A DNA stretch of 64,000 nucleotides from Haliotis rubra (GCF_003918875.1 NW_025767697.1:186001-250000); one strand, 5' to 3'; shown: positions 8,280 through 51,728, counted from the first letter of the stretch. The notes: generated by a model not told the origin, from the letters alone. Translations and numbers: made by a program.

Positions 8280-9410
8280 TCAAGGAGGACCCCTTTCGTA
8301 GACATCGTTTTCTACCATATCACAATCATTTTTCCCAGCCAGTTTACTTTTGTTAACAGAAGTGTCGGATTCGTCCTGCAGAGATTCCTTCTCTCTGTCA
8401 TACTCGAATTTATCATAGAGTCCATTGTCAACCATTCCCACGTTTGTTTCCAGTCCTACACCATACAAATCACCAACAGGATTGTCGTTGTCAGCCATGC
8501 TGCCAAAGGGTTCATCAAGATGAAGAGGCCCTCCGTCGTAGACGTCTTTTTCTATCATTTCATAACCATCTTTCCAAGACTGTTTACTGTTGTTAGGAGA
8601 AGTGTTGGATTCTACCTGCACAGTTTCTTTCTCTCTGTTAAAGTCGAATTCATCATAGAGCCCATTGTCAACCATTCCCTCGCTAGTTTCCAGTCCTTCA
8701 TCATACGAATCACCAACAGCATTGTCGTTGTCAGCCATGCTGCCAAAGGGTTCATCAAGATGAGGAGGCCCTCCGTCATAGACATCATTTTCTATCATTT
8801 CACGCTTATCTTCCCAAGACTGTTTACTGTTGTTAGCAGAAGCGTCGGATTCGACCTGCACAGATTCTTTCTCTCTGTCAAAGTCGAATTTATCATAGAG
8901 CCCATTGTCAACCATTCCCTCGCTAGTTTCCAGTCCTTCATCACACGAATCACCAACAGGGTTGTCGTTGTCAGCCATGCTGCCAAAGGGTTCATCAAGA
9001 TGAGGAGGCCCTCCGTCATAGACATCATTTTCTATCATTTCACGCTTATCTTCCCAAGACTGTTTACTGTTGTTAGCAGAAGCGTCGGATTCGACCTGCA
9101 CAGATTCTTTCTCTCTGTCAGAGTCGAATTTATCATAGAGCCCATTGTCAACCATTCCCTCGCTAGTTTCCAGTCCATCACCAACATGATTGCCTTTTGC
9201 AGCACAAGGAGGCCCTCTGTCGTAGAGGTCGTTTTCTTTCATTTCACGATTATTTTTCCAAGCCTGTTCACTATTATTATGAGAAGTGTCAGAATCGTCC
9301 TGAACAGATTCTTTCTCTCTTTCAAAGTCGAATTTATCATAGGCTACATTGTCAACCATTGCCTCTCGAAGATTATCAAAACCTCCGTCATATAAATCAT
9401 TTTCAGTCAT
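8180..9410 (-). repeat. Coding tandem repeat, 240-nt (80-aa) period, about 5 units
   Basis: tcgaatt(t/c)atcatagag(c/t)ccattgtcaaccattccc recurs in the lines starting 8401, 8641, 8881 and 9121. The central units are nearly identical. Confidence 0.95.
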
Positions 9411-9747
9411 ACCACATATTCCTTGATGACCGTTGTCAGCCCTGCTGCCATTAACCATAAATGTACTGTTGTCGTACATATCTACTGTAGAACCCAAAGG
9501 CAACGCCTTAGCGTACTGATCCTGCTCATTTTTTCCAGAAGTCTCAGTTCGGTGTCCAAGTTCTGAATTTAAGGATTGTCCAACTCTTGCTCCAAATTCT
9601 GGATCGAGCACAAAATTCTGGTGAAAGGTTTCATTTTGTTCCAAGCCATTGTGATGCTTTTCCGTATTCATGGGACTGAGTTCTAAAGGCCTTTCAAAAT
9701 GACCTTTACCGGGAGTTTCAAGAGGATGGCTCTTCTTCACATGTTTC
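8280..9747 (-). CDS. Gene A last exon: acidic cytoplasmic tail with 11 M-x-x-(N/K)-x-x-Y motifs
   Basis: Phase-2 acceptor ttcAAG|G AAA CAT and a 486-aa open frame. Motifs: MTENDLY, MVDNVAY, MKENDLY, MVDNGLY x4, MIENDVY x2, MIEKDVY, MVENDVYE. Confidence 0.85.
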
Positions 9748-12700
9748 CTTGAATAAAATAAAACAATTAACTGACATTAACTTGTGATACAGCCGACCCT
9801 TATTATCCCGAATTCGGTTATCACTGCTGTATAGATATTTGGACCCGATTCTCTAGTCAAGACCAGCTCATTATATAAACACTTTTTTTATTTCCTATGT
9901 TGCGATTAAATCGTGTTTGTTTATAATTATGAACAGATTACATTATCTCACTTATTGGTCATGACGCGTTATCTCGAGTGTCCGGATACCTGAAATTCCA
10001 ACATGATTCCGATTGGTCGAGATAACGGGATTTGACAGTATTAAAGTCTAAGATGAATATATTTTCAGAAAATTTAAAAAGTGTATAGTTGAAGATAGTT
10101 TATGCAATACAATTGTCAATATTTATTGAAAACATAAATTCTAATAAACACTCATCATGTTACAATATAAAAAAGAAAAATCTGAATATTACCTGCAAAG
10201 GACAACTGAAATCACGACAATCAAGATTGTGACAACACAGCCAGAGACAGCGGAAGCAACCCATATTATCAGTCCTGTTAAAATAAGATCATCATGATAG
10301 ATTGTCAGTGAGTTGAAGAGTAAGATTCGATGACTGGAAAGGTCTGAACAACTTGTATTACTTCATGAACAGTAATGACCTCTTACATTACTGTTCATGA
10401 CATGTTTGTTTTCTGTTAAGTGAAGATTAAGTTAAATTAGACAAAAGATATGTCGGTGCAATGCTGAGGTACCTACCCGGTTCAGGGCTGGACGTGGTTG
10501 TGAAAGATGCTTCGCCATTCTTTGTAGTCATATTTGTAGAGAATACTGATGAGAAATAAAACTGACAATTAGATACATCGCACAATGTAATTTGGTTTTA
10601 AAGTAGTAAATAAATAGATTTCGTGTGTTTATTTTCTCATTCATTTGGGACATTTAGGTGAACATATGTTTGCATATGTTTCTGACGGGTGCCACCGGTG
10701 AGAGGGTGTACGTTCAGCTTCTTGTATCATACGTTTTAACTGTTTGATGGTGATTCTTAATCAGTCAATATCGACTCATACACGCGGTACTTACTAGATT
10801 TCTCTTTCATATTCGACAGCATGAATGACATAGATTAATCCAGGGTAGTGATTTGTATATCTATATATATGTGTGTATCCCTTATATCAATGATTTGACT
10901 GTTTGTATCGGTTGTAAGTCCTATCGGTGTAAGTAATGTCTTACATCAAATGATGTGTCTTGGTTCCTCCTTTCGCAAAATAAATAGAAGTCTTAACGCT
11001 ATTCTGTCTCTAACACATATCCCATCCCACCCCTTCCAGAATATCAATTGGTCTGTCCCTAAAATGTGCATTACACAGCACACTACTTGAGTGGTTAAGA
11101 TTGTTGATTTTACGAGGAAATATTGCATGCACGGTCCATTGACTGTGATCTCTAAATGAATTGTTCCTGATCATTCCTCATGCGGTTTTATCTTGTTGAT
11201 ATTTTGTGTATCTTTTCACCTGTATAAGACTTTGGAGTGGTCACTGCCGTGGTTGACTTTGGAGTAGTCAGCGCCGTGGTTGTGTTTGTTGTTGGATCAC
11301 GTGTCACTGTTTCTGACATTGTTGATTGATCTGTTGGGAGAAAGAGGCTGCTGAATTGTGTCTTGTCAGGATTTGAAGCATTACTTTTCCTTTGAGACGA
11401 AATGTACTGTTGAATGACAATTCCTTGGAATATGTTTCGGACAGGTTTACAATAAACATATAAACATATAAACATATATGTTGACATATACTGACAAGTT
11501 TTTAGATAGAAGACATAAACATGAACGCTTACTTTTATGAGATTCTATTTTTTCGAAACTTGCGTTTATATGCGATTTGGGAAAACAAAAATGACTTTAC
11601 ATTTCAGGTTTTAAATGCTCTTCTTCTTTGTATAATTCACCAGGATGCACATAATTATTAGAATATGACCTTCACAACTGGTCAGTAAATCATTTTCATA
11701 CCGTTGTATCACTGTACCAAAATTTGAACTTGCTACCCCATGTATTTATAATTGTTTGTTATGGTAGGAATATATTGTAAATGCTACTAAGTCTTCGTTT
11801 CATAGCAACCGTTGGTTATACCATCTCTTTGAGTAGTTATCTGCATTCGTTCCTACTAGTTTTTCAGTCCTATGTTTGTTTTTTCGTTCGTTTTTATAAG
11901 AAATTGTGCGCAATGAATACCTGCACATGACTCTCGTCTGGTCGCAAGTAGTGTGAACCAACAAAGAACACAGAAATGTTTTACAATTAATAATTGTAGT
12001 ATAACAGTATCTAGGTTTACAAATCAACACAAACCACTGCAATGTAATTGCAATGCCAGAAGAGAATGTATAAACAAGGGCAGTATAGAATCTAATAGCA
12101 GTGGTAATGGCAGCAGAGTCAGTGGTTACAATATTCACCTCGCAGCAACAGTGAACAAGTCTGCAAAATATGCCTTTGCAGGATACAAAGGTGACACTAT
12201 CACACTTTATGTAGTTTGTGATCAGAGAGGTTTATGTTTTCCCACTTACATGGTCTCAAAACCTTACATGTGGCCGTCATTTAGCTTTTGGCCTGTCTTG
12301 TGAGTATTTCTGTCAGAAAACGACTGAATGTATTGCAACCAAACCTTATTTGATAGGGACATGGAGGAGAAAATGTTTGTTACAACAGTTCTGCTGTTCT
12401 GGTGGTATGTACTAAAGTATGTACTACTCATGTAGTTCTCAAGGAATATAGACATAGGATCGACTTTAAATTACTGATATACCACATAGCGACTGTGTGT
12501 ATTTACATGCGATATAAGAATATAGTGTGCACACACCGTGAAGAAATGCGTGTAAATACGTATGGTTACATGTGTCTGTTGATACCATCATCGTTTGATT
12601 TGGAAGGCCACTGTGTTGCTTTACTCACAGTCGAGTTAGTAGTATGTCCATGCGTAGATGTAGCGGTCGTAAAAGACGCTGCAACTTGAGATTTTTTATG

Positions 12701-15700
12701 TAGTTCCAAGGAAGATAGATATGTATATGCTTGCTTTGTTTGTTTTTATTTATGTATCATCTTTAATTTTCGCGGACCTTTTTCAAATGTATTAAAGAAC
12801 TGCAAGAAAAGATGTAGACATATAAGTAAACCTAATTCAAAAGCCTTAATAATGTTGTTGCTATGCAGTGAAAACATACCGAAATAGCGTTCGATCACAA
12901 TTGTTTAATGTATCGTGCACATCAATAATGTTCATACTCATACAAGAGAAACTCACTGCTAATACACGTATGGCGGTAAATATCTCATGTGAGCGGCTGA
13001 AAACGTTTAACGTATAATTAAGGTCATACAACGTCAGTATACACTCACCAATAGATGTAGACTGTTTAAATGCCGCTGTTTCAGTTGTTGGTGTGTCCGA
13101 AGTACTTGGAATGGTTGTACTCTGTGACGGCTGCTGTGTTGACGTAGTCGTGGTTGATGTATTCAATTTTTCTCCGCTGATAGTTATGTTCATTTGACCT
13201 GAATCTATGAACAAGTTATTTCTGCAGGATTCTCGAGGTCCAAGTTATATGTTTATCTTTAAGACAATTCTAGCGTGATATAGGGCTATACGTCATGTCA
13301 TTTACGTACTGAAGAATCGGTTACAATAACAATTACAGTGATTACAGTAAACTAGTTAGAAAGGCATCAGTTCGTATTTCTGGTTAATGTATTAGTTAGA
13401 TAAACAGTTATCACAGTAATGACAGTTATCATATGGGATACTCCAAAAGATAGTTTGATTAATACACACCGGCAACGCGTATCCATAGATTTGATCCATC
13501 CTGATCATGGTTATCGTAGACTATAACTATTTCGGCAGCTGTTCCAGGTAATACCCTGTTGTGCTGGTTCACGTTCACGTTTGTCCCGAGTTGTCTCCCG
13601 TCACCGGAGATGTTAAGCATCCCTGACTTCATCCGCTGTTCCACCAACGTTACTTGTAAAGTCTGCCCTGTGATCCTAACAACACAGCTGCTGGTCACAC
13701 CGACACTGTCAGGGAAGCCGGGAGAATGGAGGTACACCGACCCGCTTACTGTTGTTGTGACTGGACTACACATGTTCATACTACCTGAAACACAATGACA
13801 CAGGACAAGTAAGATAAGGTTTATGTTGGGATTTGAGACATATGTCATGAGTCACATTGAGCGAATTGCTCACACATGCTAGATTTTGCTTTGGCTTCAT
13901 GTTGATCAAGGTTGATATGACTGACTGACTGAGTTTGGTTTTACGTCGCTTTTAGCAATATTCCAGCTACATCACGGCGGGGGGAACACCAGAATACATG
14001 TACCCATGTGGGGATTCGAACCCGGATCTTCGGCGTGACGAGCCAACGCTTTAACAACTAGGCTACCCCACCGCCCCAGGTTGATATGAAGTTAACTAGC
14101 AGCTCCAAGAACCAACGCTCATTAATTACTGTCAATGTTACTGATTTGTATTGTTACCAGGATAAGGATGTTCTGTCCTACTGGCAACACTAAGGTCAAA
14201 ATCTAGATTACAGTAGGCATGAAATTCAACGATAGTCGAAGTAAAAACATTTTTTTTTTTTAAAATTAGCATACGAATTAGTAGTTGGCAGCATCCTGCG
14301 TTTGGTGTTTACAATATATATTGCTGATGGTTTGTCAAGTTTGTTGCACTCAGCAATACTCAATATTCCAGCTATATTGCGGCAGTCTTAAAATAATCTG
14401 AACCAGACAAGACAGTGATAAACAGCATGAACAGCGATCTACGCAATTGGGATACGATGACATATGTCAGTCAGATCAGCAAGCCTGACCACTCGATCCC
14501 ATTAGTCGGTTCCTTCGACAACGTAACACGTGATATAATTGGGATTACACGTTCACAGTAAAGTACAGATTCTAGTACTTGTGTTTGGTTGAGTCGCATT
14601 CCAGATTCGAACACACGCTCTCAGAGTCAAGCACTTAATCGGTTGTAGTTTAGAGCACGGAATTTGTGTACCCCTCTCACAAGTGTAAATTGGCACGGCT
14701 CCATCGGCCGACAGCTGGGAATACACAATGCCATTTAGAAAGAGGTCAAATGGTACACATGAATCTATACTTTATTGACAAAGTGCAATCCCAATATAAC
14801 ATGTCTTACTTTTGATGACTTTGTAAATGGTATTGTCTATTCGTTATTACGACAAGCATTGGTTGCTTATAGAGCAGTGTTTTTCGGTGTTGAAACACGT
14901 CTACCGGAGGAATAGCTAGATGTATCTTTGGAAAGTTCAGGATCTCTTGTCATTTTGGGTTGTTTCCATGGTAACCATACAATTTTAGAAAGACCGCTTT
15001 TGCTATATATAAATGGCGAAGTCATCACAATTTTAACTATATTTAGTCAATGCTCTGAGTGTTTCTGATACAACAAGCATTGCGTCTCCAATACATGTAA
15101 CACGTCAAGGGCACAGGTCAAGGTCACAACAGTCGAATTGTGGCTGTTTTTGTTCAGAAGTCAATATAATTGTAATGTTGCATTTTTCGTAACTGATGCG
15201 TGCATTATACGTCCAGGACCATGCATTTCGTATCGTAAGAAACGATAGAATGAACTTTCTGAAAAAGGTAAAATAATTATAGAAAGCATGGCCTGTAATG
15301 CGTCTCCATGGTTACTATAATTTATGTATTTTTTGTTGCATTTACCTTCACCGAATCTGCATCCACAAGAAGTAGGAGGTGGAAAATCTAGTTGCCTAAC
15401 ACGGCTGTGACACCATACAAAAGTCGATATTCATAACTGGTCAATAATATTCAAGCCTGATAGCGTCCTGTAATTATCAGTATATTGTGAGCTGAGCTTA
15501 CAATAACATGGGTGCTGAGAATGAGGTTAGATGACATGCACGTCGAGATCAAATGTGTGAGAATGACAAACACCTAACGTGACAATGAAAACCTTGATAG
15601 AAAACGCAGTATACCATGGTCCGCAATATGGTAAAGAGCTAGTGATCATAAGTTACGGAAACAGTAACACAATGCATAAAAGACTACTGGGTTTAAATAT

Positions 15701-17981
15701 TGACTCATACGTGTAGGTAAAATGAATCATACACTGACATTATCCATATCATTCCTTGTTCATGTTGTCAGTTTGATATACATGTAGTACTAAGTGTAGG
15801 ATATAACATGACCCGCGGGCAGTATTGAAAAGTAAGCCCATTTCCCAAGGGAAGAGGGCTTACTTTTCAATAATGCCCACTTGCATGTTATATCCAACTT
15901 ATAAACCGACCGAAGATATACTTTAGATATAATTTCAATATTTGGTATTTACTGTTGAAATCAACTGGGATGAGACTGGCAGCCGACGCCTCGCAATGCA
16001 CGTGCTAGCCGTGCCCTGCACGTGCGCTGCCCGCACTACCCGTCTTGGGAGGAACACACGGTTCATACCGACAAACAATCTCATTCTTTACAGCGATCCT
16101 TCGTAGCCTTGTGGATAAAACCGCCAAGCTAGTAAGCGAAGGGTTACGTGTTCGAAACCGGGTGTCAGCACTACATGTCGGAAATTGTCAATGACGCCAT
16201 ATTTTAAGATCGAATTCAGTGATGGCAAGACAAAGCCGTATCAATCTTCAAAACAAGTATTAATTCAAAGTCAAGGGCTATTCCTCAGAAAATCACGGGG
16301 CAGAGGAACGTTATTAAGATAATTGCCCGAAGAAGCGAGATTGTATCAGATTTTAGGGATATTACGAGAAAAAGTATCCCCTAAGAACAATAGAGTAACG
16401 TCACTGTCGGTTTATAAGTATGGGTTTAATCACGAGGACCTGGTGTCTAATCGCTGAAATGGTTAGCGCGACCTAGAGTCCGTCGGTCGTGCGAGATCCA
16501 CGTTATACATGTTCCTTGAGTCTTTCACACGAGCACCTTTTTTGCTTTGGCTTCTCGACTTATGAAATGCATGTGCATATGTGCATGTTCCAAGACAACG
16601 AAATAATCCACCTGGGACCAGCTCGAGCATATATATGCTTCACCGAGACAAGTACTAGCATCGCCTTCATTGACAGGGTTTGTTTCTATATTTTCGTGTA
16701 GCACATGCGCATAATCCAGACAATAACATGACACGTACCAAATCAACCAAATATTTCACAGTTCTTAAATGGGGAAATTATTAGTAAATAAATATTTCTG
16801 GTTACTTTCATAAAGATTTGTTACTGTCTTACTAACAGTCAACGACCAAAGTTGCCTTTGATACAGAAGTTCTTTACTTCAGCACTGAGCAGCACCGGTA
16901 ATACTGCAGTTGCTATCCGACTGTGCATCCAGCGTCTGCAAATTCGTTTATGACGTTCATGGTAAATATTTACAATAATATGTCTATAATGGACTCAGTG
17001 GCTGATATTAAAGAAATCAGTGTTTATACGTAGATCTACTACAGGTGTCTCCAATGATCACCTTTGATACAGATATACCATATTGAAGTCTCACCTTTGA
17101 TACAGTTGTACTTTACTTCAGCAGCAGCATCGGTAATATTACAGTTGTTGATGGTCGGTACCTGCATGGCTTCATAACATGACTGTTTCCCATTACAGTT
17201 TACGACCAGGCCATACTGGCTGCTGTCGAGTTTCTTACTACACGACTCAGCAGATTTCACACGACATGTCGTATCTCCATCCCCATACACCTCGTGCACG
17301 ACATGTATCCATTCCCCGGCAGGACACTGAAGCTGTACTGTAAAGACTTTCGTCAAATCCTCTATACATGTGTTTTCAGTCTTGTCACCTTTGAATATAT
17401 TGAAACTCGTTCAGTCAAACATACTTGACAAAATATACTTGAATATATTGTTCCAATTGACGGTAAAACCCTATTTGTTTTGAAATAAACGAGACGTTTC
17501 GAAGCAAAGATGCAGCGTCATCTTTAAAACATGAAATTCTGTGTGACTTCAATTCACAAAACTAGTGCGTATATATGCTGATAGGTAAACATTGCTTAAA
17601 CGCTGCAGAAATGTGTAATGTTGTCTTAAATGTGATCAATTATCAGTGTGTATTTGTACACAGTCTGAGTCTAAGTCTGATTTGGACTTTGTTGTAAGAG
17701 GTGTCTCAAAGGTATGTATCATACCACAGTTAATGTTTAAAATGGCTTGTGAGCTTTAAAATCCAGTGGCATGTAAGGCTTTTGACACTTGCGCGTCAGT
17801 CACAACAAATCACACGTACATAATGCGATATAAAATCATACGGCAACCGGAATTATGAGGAAATAATCACATTACACATACTGAAATACAGAATACAAAG
17901 ACACGTTTGTCTGTACCATTACTCACCATATACAGCCAAGAAGAAATGTAGACAGATCACAAACACCCTTTCAACATGCAT
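8280..17981 (-). CDS. Gene A (multi-exon): type I membrane receptor, SP-SUEL lectin-CUB-like-mucin-TM-long acidic NxxY-repeat tail, about 849 aa
   Basis: Exons 17927-17981, 17095-17388, 13470-13784, 13049-13204, 11220-11330, 10477-10545, 10193-10274 and 8280-9747 all have GT-AG boundaries and compatible phases (1,1,1,1,1,1,2). They sum to 2550 nt, a multiple of 3, provided exon 12570-12678 is skipped. Confidence 0.8.
9788..10040. mobile_element. Possible Tc1/pogo-type MITE
   Basis: TA-flanked, with imperfect inverted ends (tacagccgacccttattatcc...gataacgggatttgacagta). Confidence 0.35.
10193..10274 (-). CDS. Gene A transmembrane exon
   Basis: CAG|GA...TGC AG|GTAAT. Encodes GLIIWVASAVSGCVVTILIVVISVVLCR; 82 nt, phase 1 to 2. 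Confidence 0.85.
10477..10545 (-). CDS. Gene A Ser/Thr stalk exon
   Basis: CAG|TA...CCG G|GTAGGT. Encodes FSTNMTTKNGEASFTTTSSPEP; 69 nt. Confidence 0.7.
11220..11330 (-). CDS. Gene A mucin-like exon
   Basis: CAG|AT...ACA G|GTGAA. Encodes DQSTMSETVTRDPTTNTTTALTTPKSTTAVTTPKSYT; 111 nt. Confidence 0.75.
12570..12678 (-). pseudogene. Gene A mucin exon 2, frameshifted (109 nt), probably skipped
   Basis: Homologous to the intact 120-123-nt exons in C, D and E. It has a 1-nt insertion (tcgtttgatt), an internal deletion and a weakened donor (T|GTAACC). Confidence 0.65.
13049..13204 (-). CDS. Gene A CUB-end/mucin exon 1 (alternative acceptor at 13198)
   Basis: Encodes DSGQMNITISGEKLNTSTTTTSTQQPSQSTT...TSIG; donor G|GTGAGT. 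Confidence 0.8.
13470..13784 (-). CDS. Gene A CUB-like exon
   Basis: 315 nt, phase 1-1. MCSPVTTTVSGSVYLHSPGFPDSVGVTSSCVVRI matches the CUB N-terminal C...G.l.SPgFP...C.w.I pattern. Confidence 0.8.
13921..14077 (-). mobile_element. tRNA-derived SINE
   Basis: A/B-box head (ggtagcctagttgttaaagcg...gggttcgaatccc), (cagt)n tail and 12-bp TSD aggttgatatga. Related copies at about 32320-32478 and 38875-38980. Confidence 0.8.
15796..16414. mobile_element. Non-autonomous element with terminal palindrome (Crypton-like)
   Basis: Absent from the homologous intron of gene D (about 45855). About 100-bp hairpin at 15797-15898 (ggatataacatg...catgttatatcc), and ttataaaccgac/gtcggtttataa inverted pair. Confidence 0.55.
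17095..17388 (-). CDS. Gene A SUEL/Gal_lectin (rhamnose-binding-lectin-like) exon, intact
   Basis: 294 nt, phase 1-1. Eight Cys in SUEL spacing: C..LQC..G..I....VYG....C....C...CNGKQSC...C...V.YNC. Confidence 0.85.
17927..17981 (-). CDS. Gene A first coding exon (signal peptide)
   Basis: gccATG start; encodes MHVERVFVICLHFFLAVY; donor G|GTGAGT. Confidence 0.75.
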
Positions 17982-28500: not shown

Positions 28501-28867
28501 GAGTTAACATAGAAAGGCCCTCAACTGCTGGTAATGTGACCGTAATTATGTTCATCACCAGCGTTGTTTGTATTACGCTGCATTCCATCGTAGACATTTG
28601 TCTTACCATGTCGACTGAAGCCAGAATACGTGTTGGTGGCGTATGACCATCATCTATCGGGGGTCCATTACTGGTAATGCTTTTCACACCATAATGAACA
28701 GATGTTCCAGTATTCAATGAATTGTCATGCTTCTTTCTGGATGGCTTCACTACCATGCTGCAGTGATAAATATTTTACAATGTACACACATGTTCAACAA
28801 CACACAGTACAGAACCAAAGTGACACTGGGTCCGATATGTGCATTAAAGACAACATGAAGTACTTAC

Positions 28868-33705: not shown

Positions 33706-33707
33706 TA

Positions 33708-38135: not shown

Positions 38136-38870
38136 TTAGACGAAACTGTGGCAGAGGTCAATCGACATCATGTCAACCTCATTCTTACTAGTTGATCCTG
38201 CTGTGATCTTGGGTAGCTGAAACAGACATATTCACATTCACATTCACCACTCTACTCTTCAACTGTAGTGTCATACCCAGAACTCTCATATATATCATTG
38301 TCAACCATCCCTTTAACTGTACAGCCACTGACATCTTCTTCTCCATGATACAAGTCATCTTCAGGCATGCTTTCTTCATCCTGGTTGCCGTAATCTGTAC
38401 TGACATCATGGTTCTCTGTAGTAGGAGGTCCCCCATTGTATACATCGTTGTCGGTCATATGACATGTTGATTTTGTACCGTTTCCCCGATCAAACAGAAA
38501 CATGTCCATTGATTCAAGTTGATCAGTGTCGGCTTTCAGGTCACCTGTTCCAGGTGATTCAGTGTTCTCAATATCTCTCTCTTCATTCGAGCCAGTCAAG
38601 TTATCTGGTGACTGAATATATTTCGGTTGCTTCATCGTAAATGTGTTGTTATCATTCATGTTTAATCTGGAGCTACGTGACAAGACTGTAGAGAACCCGT
38701 CCTGTTCTCGGAACGCTGGTTCGTTATTTGCCTCTTGAATCTGCATTTAATGACAAATCCTCATTTCAAGGCACAAATGTTGGATCTATGATGAAATAAT
38801 GTTGGCTGCCATCATGCGTTCGTGAACCATTATGATGTTTGAACGGAATGAATTTTATTGGTGGAGCATT
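38136..38870 (-). pseudogene. Orphan, frameshifted duplicate of the gene F NxxY tail exon
   Basis: Homologous to 50936-51650 (MTDNDVY, MVDNDIYES, end MMSIDLCHSFV*). Frameshifts are present and the 5' end is cut at a SINE. The downstream 37210-38135 duplicates 50058-50935. Confidence 0.8.
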
Positions 38871-40380: not shown

Positions 40381-40588
40381 CTAGGTGTTAACATATGGAT
40401 CATCTCCACTGACAGAGTTAGCATAGAAAGGCCCTTCACTGCTGGTTATGTGGACGTAGTTATGTTCGTCACCAGAGTCGCTTGTATTGCGTTGTATTCC
40501 ATAGTAAACATTTGTTTCACCATGTCCAACGGGCGTTCCTGTTTTCGGTGAAGTGTTATTTTTCTTCCTGAATGGCTTCACCAGCATG
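40381..40588 (-). CDS. Gene D cytoplasmic exon
   Basis: Encodes MLVKPFRKKNN...NVYYGIQRNTSDSGDEHNYVHITSSEGPFYANSVSGDDPYVNT*. Confidence 0.75.
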
Positions 40589-43500
40589 CTGCAGTGACAA
40601 CATTTGACAATATACACAATTGATAATATTATGTTCAACAGCAGAAAGTAAAGCAAAATACCATAGTGGTGTCCTAACTGCCGATTGGGCGACAGTAAAC
40701 CGTATTAACAGTTACCTATTGATATGACCGTGCACATTGTCAGGAGAGATGTAAGCTCAAGCTACATTCGCTTGGTCCGTTGGGGGATGCTACGTCAAGG
40801 AGTGAGGGTCGGACGACCTAGACTTCTAACTAACAATATTGCATTCATGTTCTGGCTCACATTCATAGAATAATTATATCAACACCAGGGATATAATAAT
40901 TAAAGATTTACCCAGTCCCTCTCTTCATTACAAGGCGACTCGGATTGGACAGGATAGGGCAAGCTCTTTACCAAACGTGGAACTACAACGATCGCGAAGC
41001 GAACGTTCTGCTGACTTTCGAACCTGCACCACTTTTTTAGTGCTTACGATATCTTTTCAAGGTGTTCCAGCCTGCCACGCCTAGGCACATGTCACATGTT
41101 TCTGATTCGTTTAAAGTTAACTCATTCCATGGTCTCATGTTGTACTTCGTGATCGGAGAATTACTGTAAACTACCCGTCGGTGATTCCCCGTTAACTAAT
41201 AATTATGTTTTATATACCTTGATTAATTACCCAGCAGTGATAGCATCGATTCTATCACGAAATAACGGCAATTCTCAATAATGGGTTGTCATACTTTTCT
41301 TGTTTAAAAGATACGTTTATCCTTATAACAGTGGCACTGTGTTTGATATGTGTATTTAAGACAATATGAAGTACTTACAAATATATGACGAGGACTACAT
41401 TGATGAGAACCAGACTACCACACACCACAGATACGGCTATCACAATATCCCAGATGTTGCCTGAAACAATAGGTTCAAAAAATAAGTGCAGTCTCGAGGA
41501 CGTCAGCTTCCGCATGTTTCAGTTCTTTGCTCCTGTTTAAAATTAACGATTTGGGAGAATCTTGGATTCGTGGCCAGTGGATGTTGGCTTCGATTATCCC
41601 TGCAAAGAATATTAGTGCTATAGCCCACTCAAGTACTCTATTGCTTTCTTTCTCTGACATTGTAATACTGTGGTGGGGTTTCATCCTGTGTACCCCAAAC
41701 AGTATGTATGTTAGCACAAAACGATTCTTGTTGAGAATGTTTTGGACTTATACTTCCATACAAAATATTATATTTTCCAAATAGTTAATCAACGTCATTG
41801 TTTTTCCGATTTATTAGTAGGGTTGGGTATTGCAGAGAATTTTCATGTTGCGATATATTGCGATGCGAAAGCATATATATTGCGATATGTATTGCAATAT
41901 ATTGCAAGAAATGTTTTGAAACACAAAACTACAAATGAACAAGTTAAAACACAACAAAATCACTATGCTTGATTTGGAAAAGAACAATATAACATCAACA
42001 CAGTGGTTACTAGTTTGAACTGGTTTCTCCACTCTCAAAAAACCCCTGAGATTTAAAACATTCACATCCAAAACATTGCGAAACATTTGAAAAAACATTA
42101 AGAACACAACTTCAAACCGAACTTAACTATACTTCCAGTGTGAAAAAACGGATATATTCGAAAATTTCCGAGTGTTACGATGTTTTCCGAATGCAGGTCG
42201 AAATACCGGTTTTCGAGCAGCGTATCGCAATACGTATCGATTTCATGTCTGAATCAGTAAATATCGGTAATCCGGTTATATTGAGCAGCACTATTTATTA
42301 GTATAAAGAGATCAAGAAGTACTTCAGCTGGGTTGCAAAGTGTACTACTGGGTGCTTGATTGTGTTAACGCCTATAAGACAAAGACTGAATGTATTACAA
42401 ACCATCTATTATTATATGGATACGGTGGAGCCAATTATGTCTACAACAGTGATTCAGCTGTGGTGGTTTGTACTAAAACCTTTTTGATCAGATGCAGTTC
42501 TCACTATATCGACATGAAACTACTAAACTGCCACACAACGTTTGTGTGTAATTTCAAGCAATAGACGAATATAGTGTGTACATACTGAGAAGAAATGCGT
42601 GTAATTGCGTATACTCACTTGTGTCTGTTGTTGAAAATGTTGTTGATACCATCGTTGATTTTGAAGTCCACTGTGTTGTTATATTCCCTGTCGAACGAGT
42701 AGGTTGTCCACTCGTAGATGTAACGGTCGTAAAGGATGCTGCAATTTGAGAATGTTTTATCAGATGCAGTTCCAAGGAAGATTTAAAGTACCTTAAATAA
42801 TGCATTGATGATGCTCCGCAGTGAAAACATGATCAAATAGCGGTCGACCACACAAGTTAATGAACCATGCCCTACAGTGATGTTCACACTTACACAGGCA
42901 AAAACACTAAAAATACATGTATGGGGGTAAGTATCTTTGTAAGCAGCTGAAAACGTTTGAGGCATGAAGAGGTCCATACAACGCCACTATACACTCACCA
43001 ATAGATGTAGAATGTGCCGCTGTTTCAGTTCTTGGTGTATCCGAAGTACTTGGACTGGATGTACACTGTGAACGTGGTGGCTGCTGTGTTGATGTAGATG
43101 TGGATGATGAATCCAGTATTTCTCCGCTGATCGTTACGTTCATTTGACCTGAATCTTTGAACAAGATATTGTTACAGCATTCACTAGGTTCTAGTTCTAT
43201 GTTTATCGTTAAGAGATACGATTTCTGCATGTGGTGGGAAATTAACAAAAAATAGAGCCATGAAGGGCCATGTGTAATTCAGTTAAGGGGGAATAGGGCG
43301 CAAAATGCATTACTGTGAATACTGTATGCTAAATATGATTTTGGCATCAGTGTATTAATTGCTTGCTACCTGCAACACGTATCCATACATTTGATCCATC
43401 CTGATCATGGTTATCGTAGACTATAACTATTTCGGCAGCTAGATCCGGTAATACCCTGTTGTGCTGGTTCACGTTCACGTTTGTCCAGAGTTGTCTCCCG

Positions 43501-46500
43501 TCACCTAAGACGTTTAGCATCCCTGACCTCATCCGCTGTTCCATCAATGCTACTTCTATATTCTGCCCTGTGATCCTAGCAACACAGCTTCTGTTCACAC
43601 CGACACTGTCAGGGAAGCCGGGAGAATGGAGGTACACCGACCCGCTTACCGTTGTTGTGACTGGACTACACATGTTCATACTTCCTGAAATACAGGTACA
43701 TGGGACAAGTGTAATAATAGTTGTGTTTACTGTTTACTGTTGTTCCTTCCGATACCAAATCTATTTATCATCAAAACTAATTCCATTAGGTGTAAAATGC
43801 AAAATGCCAGTAGCAACAGCTACTCAAACAATTTTGATAAAACAAGTACGTGTTACCTTTTTCTGGACACCCCACATCAGTACTCCTCAGATGCCACGAC
43901 GTCTGCATACACACGGGATAGTGAACTGATGGACGACATTTTATCCACATATATAGCATTGCATTCAAAGACTTTGTTCAAAGTGTACAAAGTGTAGAAC
44001 TATCTAAGTAAAAAACAAAGACGTTAAACATATATGGGGCGTGGTGGGCGAGCTGTGTAAGGCGCCAGGCCAGTAATCGAGCGAGCTTGAGGGTGACGGG
44101 ATCGAGGCCCTCCTGTGACCGGGTGTAAAACCCTGGAGTCATTTTGTGTGCAGACTCTTTCAGTGTTGTCACAGCCCCTAGTGTACAGTACACAACCCTG
44201 TGCTCGTAAAGAACCCACGAGATCCGTTGGTAGATGACCAGTTGGTCCCCCATGAATACGTGCAAACCCACCTAGTTGCGGGTACAGCAAGGTGCAGTAA
44301 ACTTGGACAAAATACTGTGACTATGTGTGTCCCAGTCCACCCAGCTGTGAATGGGTACCTCGTAAGGATGGGAAAGCCATATTAACTCGGTGCGCCTAGT
44401 GGCTGCAAGAGCTGTATGATCCCCAGGGAGCTGAGATTGATAATACGACGTGCCGTTGAGATTGAATGCCAGTGATCGAGGGAGAAAAACAAAGCGCTTT
44501 TGAGCAGCTGAGCTGGATATCGGCGCTGTACATATGTTAGTATAATAGCAAATATATATATATATCGTTTATTCTTTTGTAAACTGATAACTGCCACATT
44601 GAGCTTATGGTGAAACTTCGTTCAACCAACGTAAAATTCGACCTAATACGATTGCTTTGATTATTCGAGGACATTGTCTCTGAAACCACCTAGCTCACGT
44701 TGCGCCAGTTAGCAAACCGATATGCAGCAACTCATTTGAGCCAAACTCATTTGACTTAACATTAGAATAATGAGTATTTTGAAGTGAATATAGAGTTGTG
44801 CCATTCTTGTTGATACATATCAGTGAGTATTCTCTTCATTTGAACAATAAAACAGATTCATTGCCCACAATCATGAGATATGCATACATGAGAAAATCCA
44901 GATTTAAATAACCACCATCTTACATCTGATTCCCAAGTATGTTTGCCATTCGTGTTTAGATCTTGTAAAAAAGAGATAATAACTATCCCTTTATACCGAT
45001 GTGAACAAGACCGGCAATATTGCGGTTCCTTTTCCATATTGGCTTTTAGATGGGTACCAGGTTGTATTTACTGTACATGTATGTGTTCAGGAATGAGTTA
45101 TCTGTTAATCTTTGCCCAAACGAATGTTTGACCAAAAGCATTTAATGAAATAAATTGACCTTTATGCCGATGTAAACAAAACCGACGACATGGCGGTTCC
45201 TATTCCCTGACTTTTAGCGGGGTAAATATGTGTATGTACTTCCAGTAGTGTGCAGATGCATGAGGCGCAATGCTACCATCAACGGGGAAGGGGAAAAGTG
45301 TCACAACCTGTAAGATTTAAGATTTGTCATAGTCGGCGACCATTCTGGGATGGACTTTGAATTTTGGCAGTCTTGGATTTTTCGGAAAATAGGCCCGTCT
45401 TGGCATACAACAAAAATATGTTTTATTGCGATGTCTCAGCATGTAAAGGTTTTTCATTTCCAGCGTGGGTAAGCATAAGTGTTAGAATTGGAAATCTTTG
45501 ATTTTTGGTGGCCATCTTGGACGCCATCTTGGTCGGAAAATGGGCCCATAACATCGGGCACCACCACAAAAATATGTTTTATCATGATATTTCCCAGCAC
45601 TTTGCAAAGTTTCATGCTTTAGTCCTACAGGTATATATATTTTCACCCTTGCCACCTGCACTAAACCACTTAATGTGACAATCGCAAACCTTGATCGAAA
45701 ACGCAATGTACCATGATTCGTAATATGTAACATAATGCATAAAAATGACAACTGGGTTTAAATATTGACGCCTACATGTAGGCATAAATGAATCACTGAC
45801 TGGCATTATTTAAAGCGTTCCTTGTTGATAATGTCAGTTTGAGATAGTACTAAGTATGCGTAAGATCACGAGGACCTGATGTTTAATCGCTGAAATGGTT
45901 AGTTCGACCTCGAGTCTCTCAGTCATGCGAGATCCAGGTTAAATATATTCTTTGAGTCTTGCACACGTGCACCTTGTTCTTTGGCGCCTCGACTTATGAA
46001 ATGCATGTGCATGTTCCAAGGCAAGTATGTATTCCATCTAGGACCAGCTCGAGCATATTGTGTACCGTCATAATCGCACCTTTTTGCTTTTTATGAGATA
46101 ACAGCGCCCTCAGCGAGTGGATGTTTTCTAAATGTTCGTGTCTTTGAACGAAAAGCTGACAGCTCAAACATATGCAGAAAATAACATGAAACGTAAAAAA
46201 ATAAAACAAAGGTATCACCGTGTATAAATAGATAAATTATCTGTAAATAAATATTTACTGGTTACTTTTTATAAAGATATTTTCATGTCGCCGTGACCGA
46301 AGATAACATTCATAAGCCCGCTGGCGACACACATTTTTCATTGAAAAAGTGTATGAGCAATGTAGTTCGAAGGGGGTAAAGATATTCCTCCATTACTACG
46401 TTGTGTTTTGCTGACAGTCCAGTCAGTTAATGCCCGTTCAACGACAGAACTCAGCTTTGATACAGTAGTACTTTACTTCAGCACTGAGCAGCATCAGTGA

Positions 46501-48710
46501 TGTTCCAGTTGTTATCGGGCTGTGCATCAGCATGTACTTATTAATCATTTATGAAGTTCGGGTAAATATTTACAATGATATGTGTTTGTATTATTGAATC
46601 TGTAACTGACATTTAAAAAAAATCGATGTTTATGCATCTACTAAACTTTGTCTCATAATATGGGAATACTAAACTGATGACTTACCTTTTATACAGTTAT
46701 TGTCTACTTCCAGCAGTAGCATTGGTCACATTGCAGTGGTCAATACTAGTAGGCTGTACACTTATGGCTTCCAAGACATGACTGTATTTCAAAACATTTG
46801 ATGATCTTGCTTGTTTGCAAGTGCCTTTGTTTCCAACTTGATGAATAATAATTCTATTCTAACCCGGATCTTCACGGATCCGATGAGCTTTTAACACGGA
46901 TCATTATGTATATGATGAAGACAGTACGACATTACTTGAGCGATGTTGTTTTGTAATGTCACGAAGCACAACAAGAGAATGGTCAGTTATTTAAACAAGA
47001 TTCCGAAGCATGGTACTATATACAGGTATCACCTGTCAGCCCGTCAGTGTGTATTAATGAACTTCGTAACAAAAACATTCAAAATAGGCATGTCGTAATC
47101 TCTGACAAGCGAATTGCGAATAATTTACAATTATGAATTTCAGTCTGTAAGCCATAAAACAATGGCTCCATCGGATTTGATCAATGTTTCAATCAGTCGA
47201 ACAATTGTTAACATACGGCTGACAGAGACAGATAGTACGTTTCTAGATTATATAACATCTACAATTGACGCATTCACTTATATCTGTTTCAGAGTTTGAC
47301 AGCCAATAATATCTCAAGCCTGACAGCGCGCCCGTAAAATATTTCTTAAATGGGGAAATTGTTAGTAAATAAATATTTCTGGTTACTTTCATAAAGTTTT
47401 GCTCATGTCGCCGAAGATAACATTCGTAAGCCCACTGGCGACACACGTTTTTCGCTAAGAGATTGCACTTGATGGGGGAAGACATACCGTCATTCCTACG
47501 TCGTGTCTTACTGACAGTCAGGTAATGCCCCGTCAACGACCAAAGTTACCCTTGATATAGTAGTTCTTTACTTCAGCACTGAGCAGCATCGGTAATACTG
47601 CTGTTGATATCTGGTTGTGCATTCAACATCTACACATTCGTTTATGACGTTTATGGTAAATATTTACAATAATATGTCTATAATGGACTCGGTGGCTGAT
47701 ATTAGAGAAATCAATGTTTATGTAGGTCTTCTACAGGTTTGTCCAATGAGCCCCTTTGATACAGGTATACCATATTGAAGTCTCACCTTTGATACAGTTG
47801 TACTTTACTTCAGCAATGAGTAGCATCGGTAATACTGCTGTTGATATCTGGTTGTGCATTCAACATCTACACATTCGTTTGTGACGTTTGTGGTAAATAT
47901 TTACAATAATATGTCTATAATGGACTCGGTGGCTGATATTAGATAAATCAATGTTTATGTAGATCTTCTACAGGTTTTTGTCCAATGAGCCCCTTTGATA
48001 CAGGTATACCATATTGAAGTCTCACCTTTGATACAGTTGTACTTTACTTCAGCAGCAGCATCGGTAATATTGCAGTTGTTGATGGTCTGTACATACATGG
48101 CTTCACGACATGACTGTTTCCCATTACAGTTGACAACCAGGCCATGTTGGCTGCTGCCTAGGACTTTACTACACGACTCAGCAGATGCCAGACGACATGT
48201 CACTGCATCTCCATCCCCATACGCCTCGTACTCGACATGTATCCATTCATCGACTGAAGCTGTACTGTAAAGACGTTCGACAAACCCTCTATACATCTGT
48301 TTCTCGTTCTGGTGTCACCTTTGAATATGAAATGAATCGTTCAGTCAAACACACTTGGCATGATATAACCTAAGATATTACTCTTAGATTTTATACAATC
48401 GCAGGTGAAACCCTATTACGTTTGATGAGATAAAGAAATAATCTCTGGAAATGACTCGCGCATTAACATTATGCAAACGTAATTCTACATTACTGAGGTA
48501 AGACATTACTTCTAACGTGAATCAGATACAGTTGAAAAAGTAAATCCCTAATTTTGTCAGAAAATATATAACGTTCGACATGGTGACTTAATACATACAC
48601 TATTTCAGAATGTTATATCGTGTGTATCTTGTGTACTCACCATATGCAGACATGATGTAATACCCATAAGCTGTGAACACTGTCCCAACAAATATTCGTC
48701 TGATATTCAT
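40381..48710 (-). CDS. Gene D: SP-[frameshifted SUEL]-CUB-mucin-TM-short YxxI/YxN tail; about 314 aa if the SUEL exon is skipped, otherwise a pseudogene
   Basis: Exons 48641-48710, 43370-43684, 42999-43148, 42619-42738, 41379-41460 and 40381-40588 are open, phase-compatible and sum to 945 nt. SUEL exon 48026-48318 has a 7-nt deletion. Confidence 0.6.
40670..41330. mobile_element. Probable solo LTR in the last intron of gene D
   Basis: TGT...ACA ends and 4-bp TSD gtgg. Absent from the homologous short intron of gene C. Confidence 0.6.
41379..41460 (-). CDS. Gene D transmembrane exon
   Basis: Encodes NIWDIVIAVSVVCGSLVLINVVLVIY; 82 nt. Confidence 0.75.
41818..42293. mobile_element. hAT-type MITE
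   Basis: 8-bp TSD tttattag, tagggttg/cagcacta ends and repeated atatcg/cgatat motifs. Confidence 0.6.
43370..43684 (-). CDS. Gene D CUB-like exon (open)
   Basis: 315 nt; contains YLHSPGFPDSVG. Confidence 0.75.
44035..44545 (+). mobile_element. tRNA-derived SINE with L2-like tail
   Basis: Same family as 34905-35808; core gtccacccagctgtgaatgggtacc. Confidence 0.75.
46455..48025 (-). repeat. Repeated partial copies of the SUEL exon 3' end, including an about 238-nt tandem repeat
   Basis: ctttgatacag...ctttacttcagca...gcatcggtaat-like copies at about 46455, 46686, 47550 and 47787. A similar remnant lies at about 16855 in gene A. Confidence 0.8.
48026..48318 (-). pseudogene. Gene D SUEL exon with 7-nt deletion
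   Basis: 293 nt. CTT CAG|TCG ATG versus CTT CAG TGC TCT GTC GAT in the gene E paralog. The deletion removes Cys2 and leads to an early TGA. Confidence 0.8.
48641..48710 (-). CDS. Gene D first coding exon (signal-peptide-like)
   Basis: gccATG start; encodes MNIRRIFVGTVFTAYGYYIMSAY; donor G|GTGAGT. Same position and phase as gene A exon 1. Confidence 0.7.
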
Positions 48711-49232: not shown

Positions 49233-50935
49233 ATATATTCGTTAAAAATATCTGCTATATATGCATACGTTCCGTGGATTGCTGTTTGTCATGCGCTAGT
49301 CTGTTACCCAAGGGAGACAATTCCGGTCATACTTTACAAATATGACACCCAGTGTTGTCTCCCCTTGAGCCTGAATAAGTTCCAAACACTCATATGATGT
49401 GGTAACTGTACATGAACTGGTAAGCAGATTTCTCAATGATTTCTTATCAAAGTGTCCATTAATAGGTGTGATTCGCATACAAATGACTGGTTACCCTTTG
49501 GAAAGAAAGTTCATTACATTCAAACAGTCCTGAATCATTTTTTATAAATGCCAATAAGAAAACCTATTGAAGACAAACTGTTTCTGGAATACATGCGTAG
49601 TTAAAGACCGCACTGTGTGAATGCTTAGATGTCACCCAATGAACATGCGTCGCCATTTCTTAACACAATGATTATTACCGAAGATCTGAATTAATTTACA
49701 TAAACATTTAGCGTTGTTGTGTTTTTCCCTAAACGCAAACAAACATTATAGAGCGTATATAACTTTCAAATTGCAGTAAAGGTTCTGTGTTGAAGTTCTT
49801 TCTTTTTCTGCAATGTACTAATGCATCAGGTGCTTGGGAAATGGACTTTGTTCTGATATGAAATTTCCTAAAATAAAAATTCTATATAAGACGCATTCTT
49901 ATTTCTATACAACAAATAAACGTACAGGGGAAAAGCAAATATTTATTTCTCTGCACAATGTACAATATCCCCATACACGTAATCAGTTTTTTTTGTTTGG
50001 TGAGAGTATACAATAACCTAAGTAATGATTAAGAGAAAATAAGTATGTTAATTTTAAGTCAGCGAATATATATTAAAAGTGCGTGCGTAATATTCCTGCA
50101 TTTTCATCATTGGCAGCAAGATTACTCATCATTACTGCGAGAATCAGTTAGTTAGTTATGAAGGTTGTCCGAGAATATTAGCTACTTCCAGCCGAAGCCA
50201 TGGTTGCTCTATAACTGTACGGGTGTTGCGATGTTTCGGCTGCTGGTTCCTCCTCAGCTTCGACTGAAGCCAAATATTATGGCTACTGGTTTGTCTTCCG
50301 GCCTGTATGCTAAGATCAGAAAAGCATTAAAAGATCAGTAAAATGTATGTGTAACAAACTGCTGAAGGCTTGTGACGAAGGGCCAGAATCCACTGATCAT
50401 CAGTCTGCAGAATAGCCCGTTAAGCTAACAATGCTTTTCTTTATTTGTCTGCACAATACAGGTTTTTGCGGTTTCACCCGTTCATGTTGTAAGCATCTAT
50501 GAACAATAACACAATAACTGGACACGTTGTGTCATTACTGAAATACAGAACTGTTAAACCCACTTCATTTGATGCAGGAAAAACAATCATACCTACACTC
50601 ACAGAAGGAGATATCTCTCCTTCAGAATGTCCTGGCATAAACAAGACATAATTATATTAATACCGAGTGAATACAGCCTTATATGGGCATAAAGGATACA
50701 TAAGACAGTTTTTAACAATGACACATGCAATTTCCATACAAGGTTTTCAAGTGATATATTTGTGTACTATATTTGAGTACTATATATATCCTTTGGTATA
50801 GCTATTTATCGATTGCAAATATTCATAAGGTTTATGCCGCAGATAATATGTTTACATGTAATGCCTGACATCTGTGCCTGGGAGGTCATCGACAGAGAAT
50901 CAGGAACATAATCAACTGTTATGAGCGTACAAGGT

Positions 50936-51728
50936 TTACACGAAACTGTGGTAGAGGTCATTAGACATCATGTCAACCTCCTCCTTAGCTGACCCTGCTG
51001 TATTGATATCTTGGGTAGCTGAAACAGACACTTCCTCAAATTCACCATTTTGATCTGCTACTGTAGTGTCATATCCAGAACTCTCATATATATCATTGTC
51101 CACCATCCCTTCAATAGTACTGACGCTGACATCTTCTTCTCCATGAAACAAGTCATCCTCTGGCGCGCTTTCTTCATCCTGGTTGCCGTCATCGGTACTG
51201 ACATCATGGTTCTTTGTAGTAGGAGGTCCCCCACAGTACACATCGTTTTCGATCATGTGACACGTGGATTTTGTAGTGTTTCCACGATCAAACAGAAACA
51301 TGTCCACCGATTCAACTTGATCAGTGTCAGCTTTCAGGTCACCTGTTTCAGGTGATTCAGTGTCCTCGACATGTTTATCTTCATTTGAACCAGTCAGGCT
51401 ATCTGGTGACGGAGTACATCTCGGATGCTTGATCGTAAATGTGTTGTTTTCATTCATGTTTATTCTAGAGCTACGTGGCAATACTACAGAGTATCTGTCC
51501 TGTACTCGGAGGGCCCTGGTTTCTTCTTTGCCTCTTGAGTCTGTATTTAATGACATATCCCCATTTCCAGACATTAATGCTGGATCTATGATGAAATAAT
51601 GTTGGCTGCCATCATGCTTTCGTAAACCATTAGGTGTCCTATTGTGGGGAGAGTGGAGCTCCAGAGGTCTGTCAATGCCACCGTTGTGAGGAGAAGCTGC
51701 AGAACGGTTAGCTTTATCATTTTTACAC
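50936..51728 (-). CDS. Gene F last exon: acidic NxxY tail ending in -SFV
   Basis: Phase-2 acceptor tgCAG|G and an open frame of about 263 aa. Contains MIENDVY, MVDNDIYES and MMSNDLYHSFV*. Its N-terminal part (RPLEL, FIIDP) is homologous to the gene A tail. Confidence 0.7.

Follow-up and report, generated by a model that had tools for sequence, protein, structure and literature searches.

Vertebrate paired receptors (KIR, Ly49, SIRP, PIR/LILR, CD200R and the Siglec pairs) are clustered, fast-evolving genes whose products have near-identical ectodomains and different signalling parts. Paired and modular immunoreceptors are regarded as a vertebrate theme, and few invertebrate cases are backed by evidence from evolution as well as from expression. 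Here we describe a tandem array of type-I receptor genes on the minus strand of a 64,000-nucleotide (nt) stretch of the blacklip abalone (Haliotis rubra) genome (GCF_003918875.1, NW_025767697.1:186001-250000; hereafter the window), in which the same type of ectodomain, composed of a SUEL-like lectin domain and a CUB domain, is joined to one of two unrelated 3' cassettes that we call L (long tail) and S (short tail). Like those of the vertebrate systems, the abalone ectodomains cluster by species and not by tail, and the cluster includes pseudogenes and differs between haplotypes. Unlike them, the abalone heads are lectin and CUB domains rather than immunoglobulin or C-type lectin domains, the tails carry no immunoreceptor tyrosine-based inhibition motif (ITIM), and the short form bears motifs of its own and has no basic transmembrane residue for an adaptor with an immunoreceptor tyrosine-based motif for activation (ITAM).

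Other described receptors share single features with the array. Membrane proteins of the SUEL/RBL type, such as Caenorhabditis elegans EVA-1, human EVA1C and the latrophilins, have an N-terminal SUEL-type lectin domain; we know of no CUB domain directly after SUEL, followed by a mucin stalk and tails such as those described here, in EVA-1/EVA1C or latrophilins. The engulfment receptors Draper, MEGF10 and CED-1 resemble the abalone proteins as invertebrate type-I receptors with a long-spaced ITAM and with an NPxY-type phosphotyrosine-binding (PTB) domain site, to which the abalone NxxY motifs may correspond, and Draper-I and Draper-II of Drosophila combine one ectodomain with alternative tails that have different partners (PMC8092387). 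Draper differs in that it has both motifs in one tail of one spliced gene, whereas the abalone motifs are split between separate cassettes or genes, and its EMI/EGF ectodomain has no sequence homology to the SUEL/CUB ectodomain. Among mollusc proteins, the oyster transmembrane C-type lectins CgCLec-TM1 and CgCLec-HTM are also lectin-type receptors with a short tyrosine-motif tail, and are reported to signal from a hemITAM through Syk to ERK (review PMC13027682); these have a different lectin fold and a single YxxL, and no long-tail partner genes have been described for them.

All array genes discussed here lie on the minus strand, and the order within a unit is signal peptide, SUEL-like lectin, CUB, Ser/Thr-rich mucin stalk, one transmembrane helix and tail. 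Self-comparison of the window (G+C about 39%, with a single assembly gap at 53218-53394) revealed SUEL, CUB and Ser/Thr-rich stalk exons repeated in four units, with SUEL and CUB exons, respectively, at 17.4 and 13.8 kb (A), 37.0 and 31.4 kb (C), 48.3 and 43.7 kb (D) and 62.7 and 59.4 kb (E). A fifth, divergent CUB exon at 54.5 kb belongs to unit F. Gene A is intact, the only gene in the window that clearly is. A long minus-strand open reading frame (ORF) at 8283-9776 is 99% identical to the H. rubra protein listed by NCBI as "uncharacterized protein LOC124265002", encoded on a contig of 370 kb, and a greedy splice search with canonical GT/AG sites gave eight exons for A whose translation equals XP_046555748 (isoform X7, 849 amino acids (aa), P0048) exactly. 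This spliced model defines the following exons of A:

17927..17981, minus strand: exon 1, signal peptide MHVERVFVICLHFFLAVY.
17095..17388, minus strand: SUEL-like lectin exon, eight Cys, with a full-length, sub-threshold match to PF02140.
13470..13784, minus strand: CUB exon, phase 1-1, 315 nt, with a CUB fold.
13049..13204, minus strand: Ser/Thr-rich stalk exon.
11220-11330 and 10477-10545, minus strand: further stalk exons.
10193..10274, minus strand: transmembrane exon, 82 nt, GLIIWVASAVSGCVVTILIVVISVVLC.
8280..9747, minus strand: long acidic tail exon with 488 aa of tail, ten MxxNxxY motifs and 240-nt tandem repeats.

The S cassette is seen in D, which has the following exons:

48641..48710, minus strand: signal-peptide exon MNIRRIFVGTVFTAYGYYIMSAY, compared with P0045 and P0046; its 3' boundary is approximate.
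48026..48318, minus strand: SUEL exon; compared with the alternate haplotig (L003) it lacks 7 bp, a deletion that shifts the frame and removes a conserved Cys.
43370..43684, minus strand: CUB exon; RNA contigs end exactly at 43370 and go on in the next exon.
42999..43154, minus strand: stalk exon, from RNA contigs (X2 record 10 and X3 record 18) and splice sites.
41379..41460, minus strand: transmembrane exon, 82 nt, NIWDIVIAVSVVCGSLVLINVVLVIY, from spliced RNA contigs and AG/GT flanks, with the same structure in XP_046565946.
40381..40588, minus strand: short-tail exon, 68 aa, with YYGI-x12-YVHI, YAN, YVNT and a stop, from RNA contigs and splice sites.

The deduced C-terminus of D is ...VLVIYFMLVKPFRKKNNTSPKTGTPVGHGETNVYYGIQRNTSDSGDEHNYVHITSSEGPFYANSVSGDDPYVNT, and RNA contigs carry its 3' untranslated region to at least 39402. 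We rejected the hydrophobic start of the ORF at 40381-40656 as a membrane segment; it is intron, the exon beginning at 40588 and the transmembrane exon being separate. The L cassette consists of a transmembrane exon and a tail that is long, acidic and disordered and in which psi-x-x-N-[DG]-psi-Y recurs (in A and in F-type tails), and the S cassette of another 82-nt transmembrane exon and a 68-aa tail with the core NVYxGI-x12-YxxI...YxN...PYVNT (in D, and degenerate in C). An earlier note on this stretch, made from the sequence, had described the long acidic tail of A with its MxxNxxY repeats, the use by C and D of a different transmembrane exon (they share one that is unlike that of A at 10274-10193), and the tail of about 68 aa in D with YYGI-x12-YVHI, YAN and YVNT (exon 40588-40381), and on each of these points our analysis agrees with it. 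Just past the stop of A, an extra partial copy of the 80-aa tail repeat (MVDNGLYDK) lies at 8123-8311 (minus strand) in another frame; the repeat array of A's tail is shortened by a frameshift.

Similarity among the ectodomain exons of units A, C, D and E is 75-91%, which confirms the note's remark that their CUB and SUEL exons are highly similar, and the protein identity of the CUB exon to that of D is 86% for A, 82% for C and 75% for E, falling to 42% for F, which the note had singled out as more divergent. The domain names given earlier also hold. The SUEL exon matched Pfam PF02140 over its full length (positions 1-80 of 80) with 22-26 bits (E 1e-5 to 2e-4), a score below the gathering cut-off of 31.4 bits for that family. 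SUEL domains have eight conserved Cys, forming four disulfides, in about 95 residues; there are eight in the SUEL exons of A, E and P0046, and these are invariant or nearly so in the alignment. At the sites of YGR and DPC...KYL, which we take to be the sugar-binding motifs of the domain, the exons read YGD(G/D) and NNC...KYN, and because the YGR and DPC motifs are lost, sugar binding is uncertain. For the CUB exon, comparison of single exons with Pfam PF00431 gave no match even at E up to 5, and we therefore used structure prediction. A VIA-align 2 search with the AlphaFold CUB model (predicted local distance difference test score about 80 in the CUB part) returned CUB domains as all 22 best chains, at Z 9.0-11.8 before a drop to Z 7, with root-mean-square deviations of 2.1-2.7 Å (about 2.2) over 93-105 aligned residues. 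An independent search with Foldseek returned the CUB domains of C1r, neuropilin and PCPE-1 (E ~1e-4). The fold in this model is clearly that of a CUB domain.

When a profile of the CUB exon was run against 1.84 billion representatives, only 18 matches were found at E <1e-3; the ten named among these 18 are nine Haliotis proteins and one 92-aa ENA fragment that bears no protein name, and the array family appears to be restricted to Haliotis. Long-tail proteins are present in H. rubra, H. asinina, H. cracherodii and H. rufescens, and short-tail proteins at several loci of H. rubra and in H. asinina. The only annotations that the family bears in four abalone genomes are "uncharacterized", "mucin-22-like" and "cell wall protein DAN4-like", and our literature searches for abalone SUEL/CUB receptors and for mollusc paired receptors found nothing specific; the array genes are an unstudied family of cell-surface receptors.

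The earlier note had called for ectodomains and tails to be compared separately, and when this was done the ectodomain tree was discordant with tail type. A maximum-likelihood tree of SUEL plus CUB (17 rows, some of them Gnomon models) separated A-type from F-type ectodomains (100/100), and within each type the sequences grouped by species, not by tail. The H. asinina proteins P0006, with an L tail, and P0045, with an S tail, are sisters (99/99), as are the F-type sequences P0015 (S) and P0011b (L) (97/94); P0015, which we verified on the DNA (L005), is an F-type ectodomain joined to a short tail. The approximately unbiased (AU) test rejected both a single clade of the S-tailed A-type ectodomains (p = 9e-5) and a clade of all S-tailed ectodomains including the F-type copy (p = 2e-10). 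Comparison of synonymous divergence (dS), for which counts are small, gave about 0.10 between the CUB exon of A (L) and that of C or D (S), against 0.14-0.26 for CUB exons of the two species, and 0.26-0.44 for the short-tail exon of D versus H. asinina and 0.29 for D versus the H. rubra paralogue P0037. The ratio of nonsynonymous to synonymous divergence (dN/dS) in the CUB exon was 0.5-1.3 among paralogues in the window, above the value for the tail (0.19-0.45 between pairs of short-tail exons). The tails are old and constrained; the heads, which L and S genes have in common, are young and under less constraint. That the heads are so much younger and cluster by species means that ectodomains have been homogenised or reshuffled among genes of the two tail types. 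Gene conversion or exon shuffling would produce old tails with young, shared heads, and leaves this kind of pattern in vertebrate paired receptors. Both cassettes predate the split between H. rubra and H. asinina, and H. rufescens has a diverged tail of the S type. The combination of one ectodomain with different tails is real and older than the species split.

Each cassette retains a distinct set of tyrosine motifs. MxxNxxY occurs ten times in the tail of A, three times in F-type tails and five times in H. rufescens, and it is kept between A-type and F-type tails, which are otherwise about 25% identical, as well as between species. In its fuller form, M-x-x-N-[DG]-psi-Y, the motif combines its Tyr with Asn at -3 and a hydrophobic residue at position -5/-6, and Pro never occurs at -2. 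Among the eight intact short tails compared, which belong to H. rubra and H. asinina, four Tyr together with their +3 Ile and +2 Asn are invariant, within a block that reads NVY.GI..NT...GDEHNY..ITSS.G..Y.N..SG.DPYVNT (n = 8); the N-terminal half of the tail varies, and this block is its sole invariant part, even in P0015 with its different upstream tail and ectodomain. An ITAM pattern (YxxL/I, 6-12 residues, YxxL/I) is present as YYGI-x12-YVHI in D and as Y[DA]GI-x12-Y[GD][HR]I in the seven other tails, and candidate Grb2-type YxN sites, Y[AV]N and YVN, are invariant in all eight. In H. rufescens, P0014 has a longer, homologous, Tyr-rich tail in which the Tyr positions are kept (YERL...YGDT...YINT) and in which YxN occurs seven times, in six cases as Y[AI]N. 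YxN is the most persistent element of the short tail, the exact ITAM-like pair being limited to the closer species. The earlier note had considered that the Tyr motifs might not be conserved in related species; they are invariant across the eight tails, and a diverged homologue exists in H. rufescens. No L, S or H. rufescens tail matched an ITIM ([SIVL]xYxx[ILV]) or an immunoreceptor tyrosine-based switch motif, and no transmembrane segment contains a basic residue; the transmembrane exons of C and D, with neither K nor R, have a conserved Asp at the outer boundary.

To this evidence from sequence we can add evidence of expression for D. Reads were placed on 38000-43999, and spliced RNA contigs in three runs join the CUB, stalk, transmembrane and short-tail exons of D. 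RNA contigs from run X2 (773 nt) and run X3 (833 nt) cover 43495-43370, 43154-42998 and 40588-40120, with 81 letters unplaced before the last segment; these 81-82 nt are the transmembrane exon at 41460-41379. The contigs splice locally and carry the S cassette only. The note had raised the prospect that the short-tail genes are never expressed, and D is both transcribed and correctly spliced. An intact version of D is found in XP_046565946 (P0046, 357 aa), which has exactly the exon structure of D and a tail that differs by one residue. P0046 lies on a 90-kb contig, L003, that we take to be the alternate haplotig because it is colinear with window positions 53666-38091 at about 94% identity. 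D is intact on this haplotig and frame-broken in the present haplotype by the 7-bp SUEL deletion; nucleotide divergence between the two is about 6%, and at the protein level 12 of 104 residues differ in the CUB exon of D but only one of 68 in its tail. The match to L003 ends beyond window position 38091, where there may be a structural difference, with gene C absent from L003. We rejected the alternate haplotig as the source of the RNA contigs, which share 17 of 34 variants with L003, and because of this we assign the contigs to a third haplotype of the D locus. The D locus is expressed and highly polymorphic, on the evidence of contigs from this third haplotype and not from the frame-broken allele. 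For gene A, four RNA-like, transcriptome-sized runs of one study contained about half of the words sampled from the tail exon, a sign of expression drawn from word shares. The four runs that best match D's stretch (X1-X4) and the four that best match A's tail exon (X11-X14) are different samples of the same study, and these word shares alone hint at expression maxima of short-tail and long-tail genes in different tissues or animals. Very high-copy repeats lie at 38800-39400 and 41800-42400; their summed contig depth is between 1e5 and 7e6 in the DNA run, and between 1e2 and 2e4 in the RNA-like runs.

Not every short-tail copy in the window is in the state of D. The earlier note had assigned a short tail with Tyr motifs to both C and D; this stands for D, but in C the tail is frameshifted and interrupted by a TGA stop, and its motifs are out of frame. 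Read in the homologous frame, the tail of C gives YDGM...YGHITSS-stop...YVN...CVNT, with YDGM in place of YxGI. Upstream of the SUEL exon of C no signal exon was found, and C is best read as a pseudogene. Its recognisable exons are:

36752..37049, minus strand: SUEL exon, without its acceptor AG; close to its 3' end a 2-bp deletion shifts the frame and removes the last Cys.
31122..31436, minus strand: CUB exon, open.
28868..28949, minus strand: transmembrane exon of the short-tail type, 82 nt, shared with D.
28470..28757, minus strand: short-tail exon, degenerate, with a frameshift relative to D and P0015, an in-frame TGA after YGHITSS and the last motif changed from Y to C.

Damage of this kind would be expected if the short-tail copies of the window were the debris of birth-and-death evolution, without a signalling role, and if their likeness to ITAM and YxN sites were due to chance in a Tyr-rich tail. 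C has at least four lesions (the lost acceptor, the 2-bp deletion, the tail frameshift and the stop), D has its 7-bp frameshift, and E and F are incomplete; some of the lesions may be errors of the assembly. However, the alternate haplotig carries an intact short-tail gene, as do other places on the same contig and the genome of H. asinina, the D locus is transcribed and spliced, and the tail shows a dN/dS of 0.2-0.45 with the motif block as its sole invariant part. When D's tail was shuffled with its composition preserved, the ITAM-like pattern arose in only 0.09% of cases, and the pattern plus two YxN motifs in 0.007%, although these figures are not clean probabilities, the motif patterns having been chosen after the sequence was seen. 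Taking both sides together, we consider debris a distinctly unlikely explanation.

Another possibility is that the two tails originated as, and in the main still are, an isoform switch, in which one gene has two alternative 3' cassettes chosen by alternative splicing and polyadenylation, and that separate L and S genes are derived and partly decayed. The H. rufescens gene LOC124137133 has isoforms with a long tail (X1/X2) and with a Tyr-rich tail (X3/X4) that share ectodomain exons. At this locus (L002) the shared ectodomain exons occupy 10001-15119, the long-tail exon 30038-30928 and the Tyr-rich exon 33803-34429, 3 kb downstream, with no head exons between the two tail exons; Draper-I and Draper-II offer a precedent (PMC8092387). 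These H. rufescens isoforms, however, are Gnomon predictions and possibly an artefact. In the window, a relic of a long-tail exon lies 1.5 kb downstream of the short-tail exon of D, and the features of this relic and of unit F are as follows:

38139..38894, minus strand: relic F-type long-tail exon behind D, with frameshifts and an early stop.
54182..54502, minus strand: divergent CUB' exon of F, with both Cys lost and SPGYP changed to PQATL.
50936..51728, minus strand: F-type long acidic tail exon of F, open, 264 aa, with three MxxNDxY motifs.

The 5' part of the relic exon has been replaced by the high-copy repeat at 38800-39400. We tried the relic as proof of a tail swap and rejected it: its tail is F-type whereas the ectodomain of D is A-type, and in H. 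asinina the S-tail genes alternate with F-type genes (L007). The relic may be the remnant of a lost neighbour rather than the former tail of D. Moreover, A, P0037, P0045 and P0015 each have a single cassette, and the RNA contigs of D contain the S cassette only. We regard an isoform switch of this kind as unlikely. As for F itself, the note's statement that it ends in a long acidic tail with repeats is borne out by the open tail exon and its three motifs, but not for a complete gene: stalk exons are present (including 52693-52755), no signal exon or SUEL' exon was found in the window, and a hydrophobicity scan and a relaxed tblastn search with three F-type transmembrane segments found no transmembrane exon at 51.7-54.2 kb, whereas the H. 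rufescens orthologue of F (L001) has a separate one. F is a relic.

The public gene models of LOC124265002 bear on a further explanation, according to which the SUEL and CUB exons of E, D and C are alternative 5' cassettes spliced in cis to the 3' exons of A, as in the protocadherin and UGT1A variable-exon clusters. Isoforms X2-X6 and X8 (P0001, P0049-P0053) do join head exons of E, D or C to the 3' exons of A, and E has no 3' end of its own. Within the window, E consists of its 5' half, with no transmembrane or tail exon:

62450..62744, minus strand: SUEL exon of E, open; the signal exon is past the window end.
59134..59448, minus strand: CUB exon of E, followed by a stalk exon at about 58712-58870.

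However, the isoforms mix exons of up to three neighbouring units and even the halves of two SUEL exons (5' from E, 3' from D), skipping exactly the frameshifted parts, as gene predictors do with broken tandem paralogues. The RNA contigs of D splice to D's own stalk, transmembrane and tail exons, and C and D have terminal exons of their own. Because frameshifted parts are avoided and D transcripts splice locally, we regard X2-X6 and X8 as artefacts of predicting across broken tandem paralogues, and a variable-exon cluster as very improbable. Only isoform X7 (P0048) is a local, colinear model of A, and the practical result is that the public models of LOC124265002 are largely chimeric across four gene units. 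As a separate observation, frame-broken transposase ORFs of the Tc1/mariner type lie at 56963-57776 (minus strand; insertion at 57117-57776; HTH_Tnp_Tc3_2, E 3.5e-10), in the 3' part of E and in the place expected for the stalk, transmembrane and tail exons of that gene itself.

We favour, with moderate confidence, the reading that this is a two-cassette array in which the tails are old, the heads are shared and tyrosine signalling would be routed to different outputs. The Grb2 Src homology 2 (SH2) domain prefers pYxN, and NPxY-like sites bind PTB domains; the NPxY-type motif for PTB docking or endocytosis is psi-x-N-P-x-Y. If ligand binding were to lead to tyrosine phosphorylation of the tails, the motifs of the S tail suggest that its ITAM-like pair would recruit a tandem-SH2 kinase of the Syk type and its YxN sites Grb2, and the L tail would offer many NPxY-like sites to PTB adaptors of the Shc, IRS, Ced-6/GULP or Dab type, for docking or for endocytosis and internalisation. 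Related ligands would in this way be routed to different outputs. Judging from the motifs, a split between an S tail for "signalling" and an L tail that is "endocytic or scaffold" would be equally plausible.

Several points weigh against this two-cassette reading. The ectodomain tree may include chimeric Gnomon models, and the groups submitted to the AU test were named after the first tree had been seen. The long-tail NxxY motifs are without the Pro of NPxY. For the short tail, 29 of 68 columns are invariant and the species compared are close relatives, so that the invariance of the four Tyr is only moderately informative; the ITAM-like spacing of 12 is at the upper limit of the definition; and in the H. 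rufescens tail the second YxxI is lost (YGDT), with a separate YSNL-x8-YERL pair present. The RNA runs are RNA by guess and come from one study, and only the splicing of their contigs marks them as RNA. Both short-tail copies in the window carry disabling lesions and F is without a transmembrane exon, so that within the window the "pair" is weak, consisting of a pseudogene (C), a gene that is frame-broken in this haplotype (D) and a relic (F). Finally, activating versus inhibitory polarity is not assignable from the tails or transmembrane segments.

The earlier note had described the locus in terms of paired-receptor logic. Near-identical heads on two unrelated tails and the discordance of the tree are consistent with this description, and the lack of an ITIM and of a basic transmembrane residue is not; paired-receptor logic is a fair analogy for the evolutionary pattern and, as a mechanism, is unproven. 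In a stronger form, a mollusc would have independently evolved a paired-receptor system on a non-Ig scaffold of SUEL and CUB domains, with heads that gene conversion keeps alike, or diversifies together, across genes with an ITAM/Grb2-type or a multi-NxxY PTB-type tail, and with haplotypes that differ in intact copies like those of the KIR and Ly49 loci. We put this forward tentatively, as a possibility that we think less probable than not by a clear distance; if true, it would imply pathogen-driven or self/non-self-driven selection on an invertebrate receptor cluster. Should the tails of the array engage different adaptors, abalone would provide a compact system for the study of one recognition module wired to alternative outputs, and of how gene conversion keeps heads matched, and there may be a bearing on disease resistance in farmed abalone.

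Other features were observed around the array. At the low end of the window, a signal-peptide exon of an F-type gene at 552-725 (minus strand; MQFVLVFRGVVFLCIVNLILSS) is 78% identical to residues 1-23 of P0015, and the next array gene begins there and runs off the window. Between A and C, gene B (21124-25807, plus strand) is on the opposite strand and convergent with C, and encodes a transmembrane segment (24064-24141) as well as a tail with TIYEEL, in an ORF at 24807-25208. Segments resembling B (82-93% nucleotide identity) lie downstream of the short-tail genes P0015 and P0037 on the same contig:

L004, 4401-5987 and 26353-27751: B-like segments.
L005, 13336-14922: B-like segment.

A short-tail gene plus a B-like gene may therefore form a repeated unit. 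Lastly, a 430-nt repeat at 4168-4591 and 33281-33709 (plus strand), with copies that are 90% identical and an ORF of 82-85 aa (MSFTN.QVMFGIK...), probably belongs to a dispersed element and has no relation to the receptor genes.

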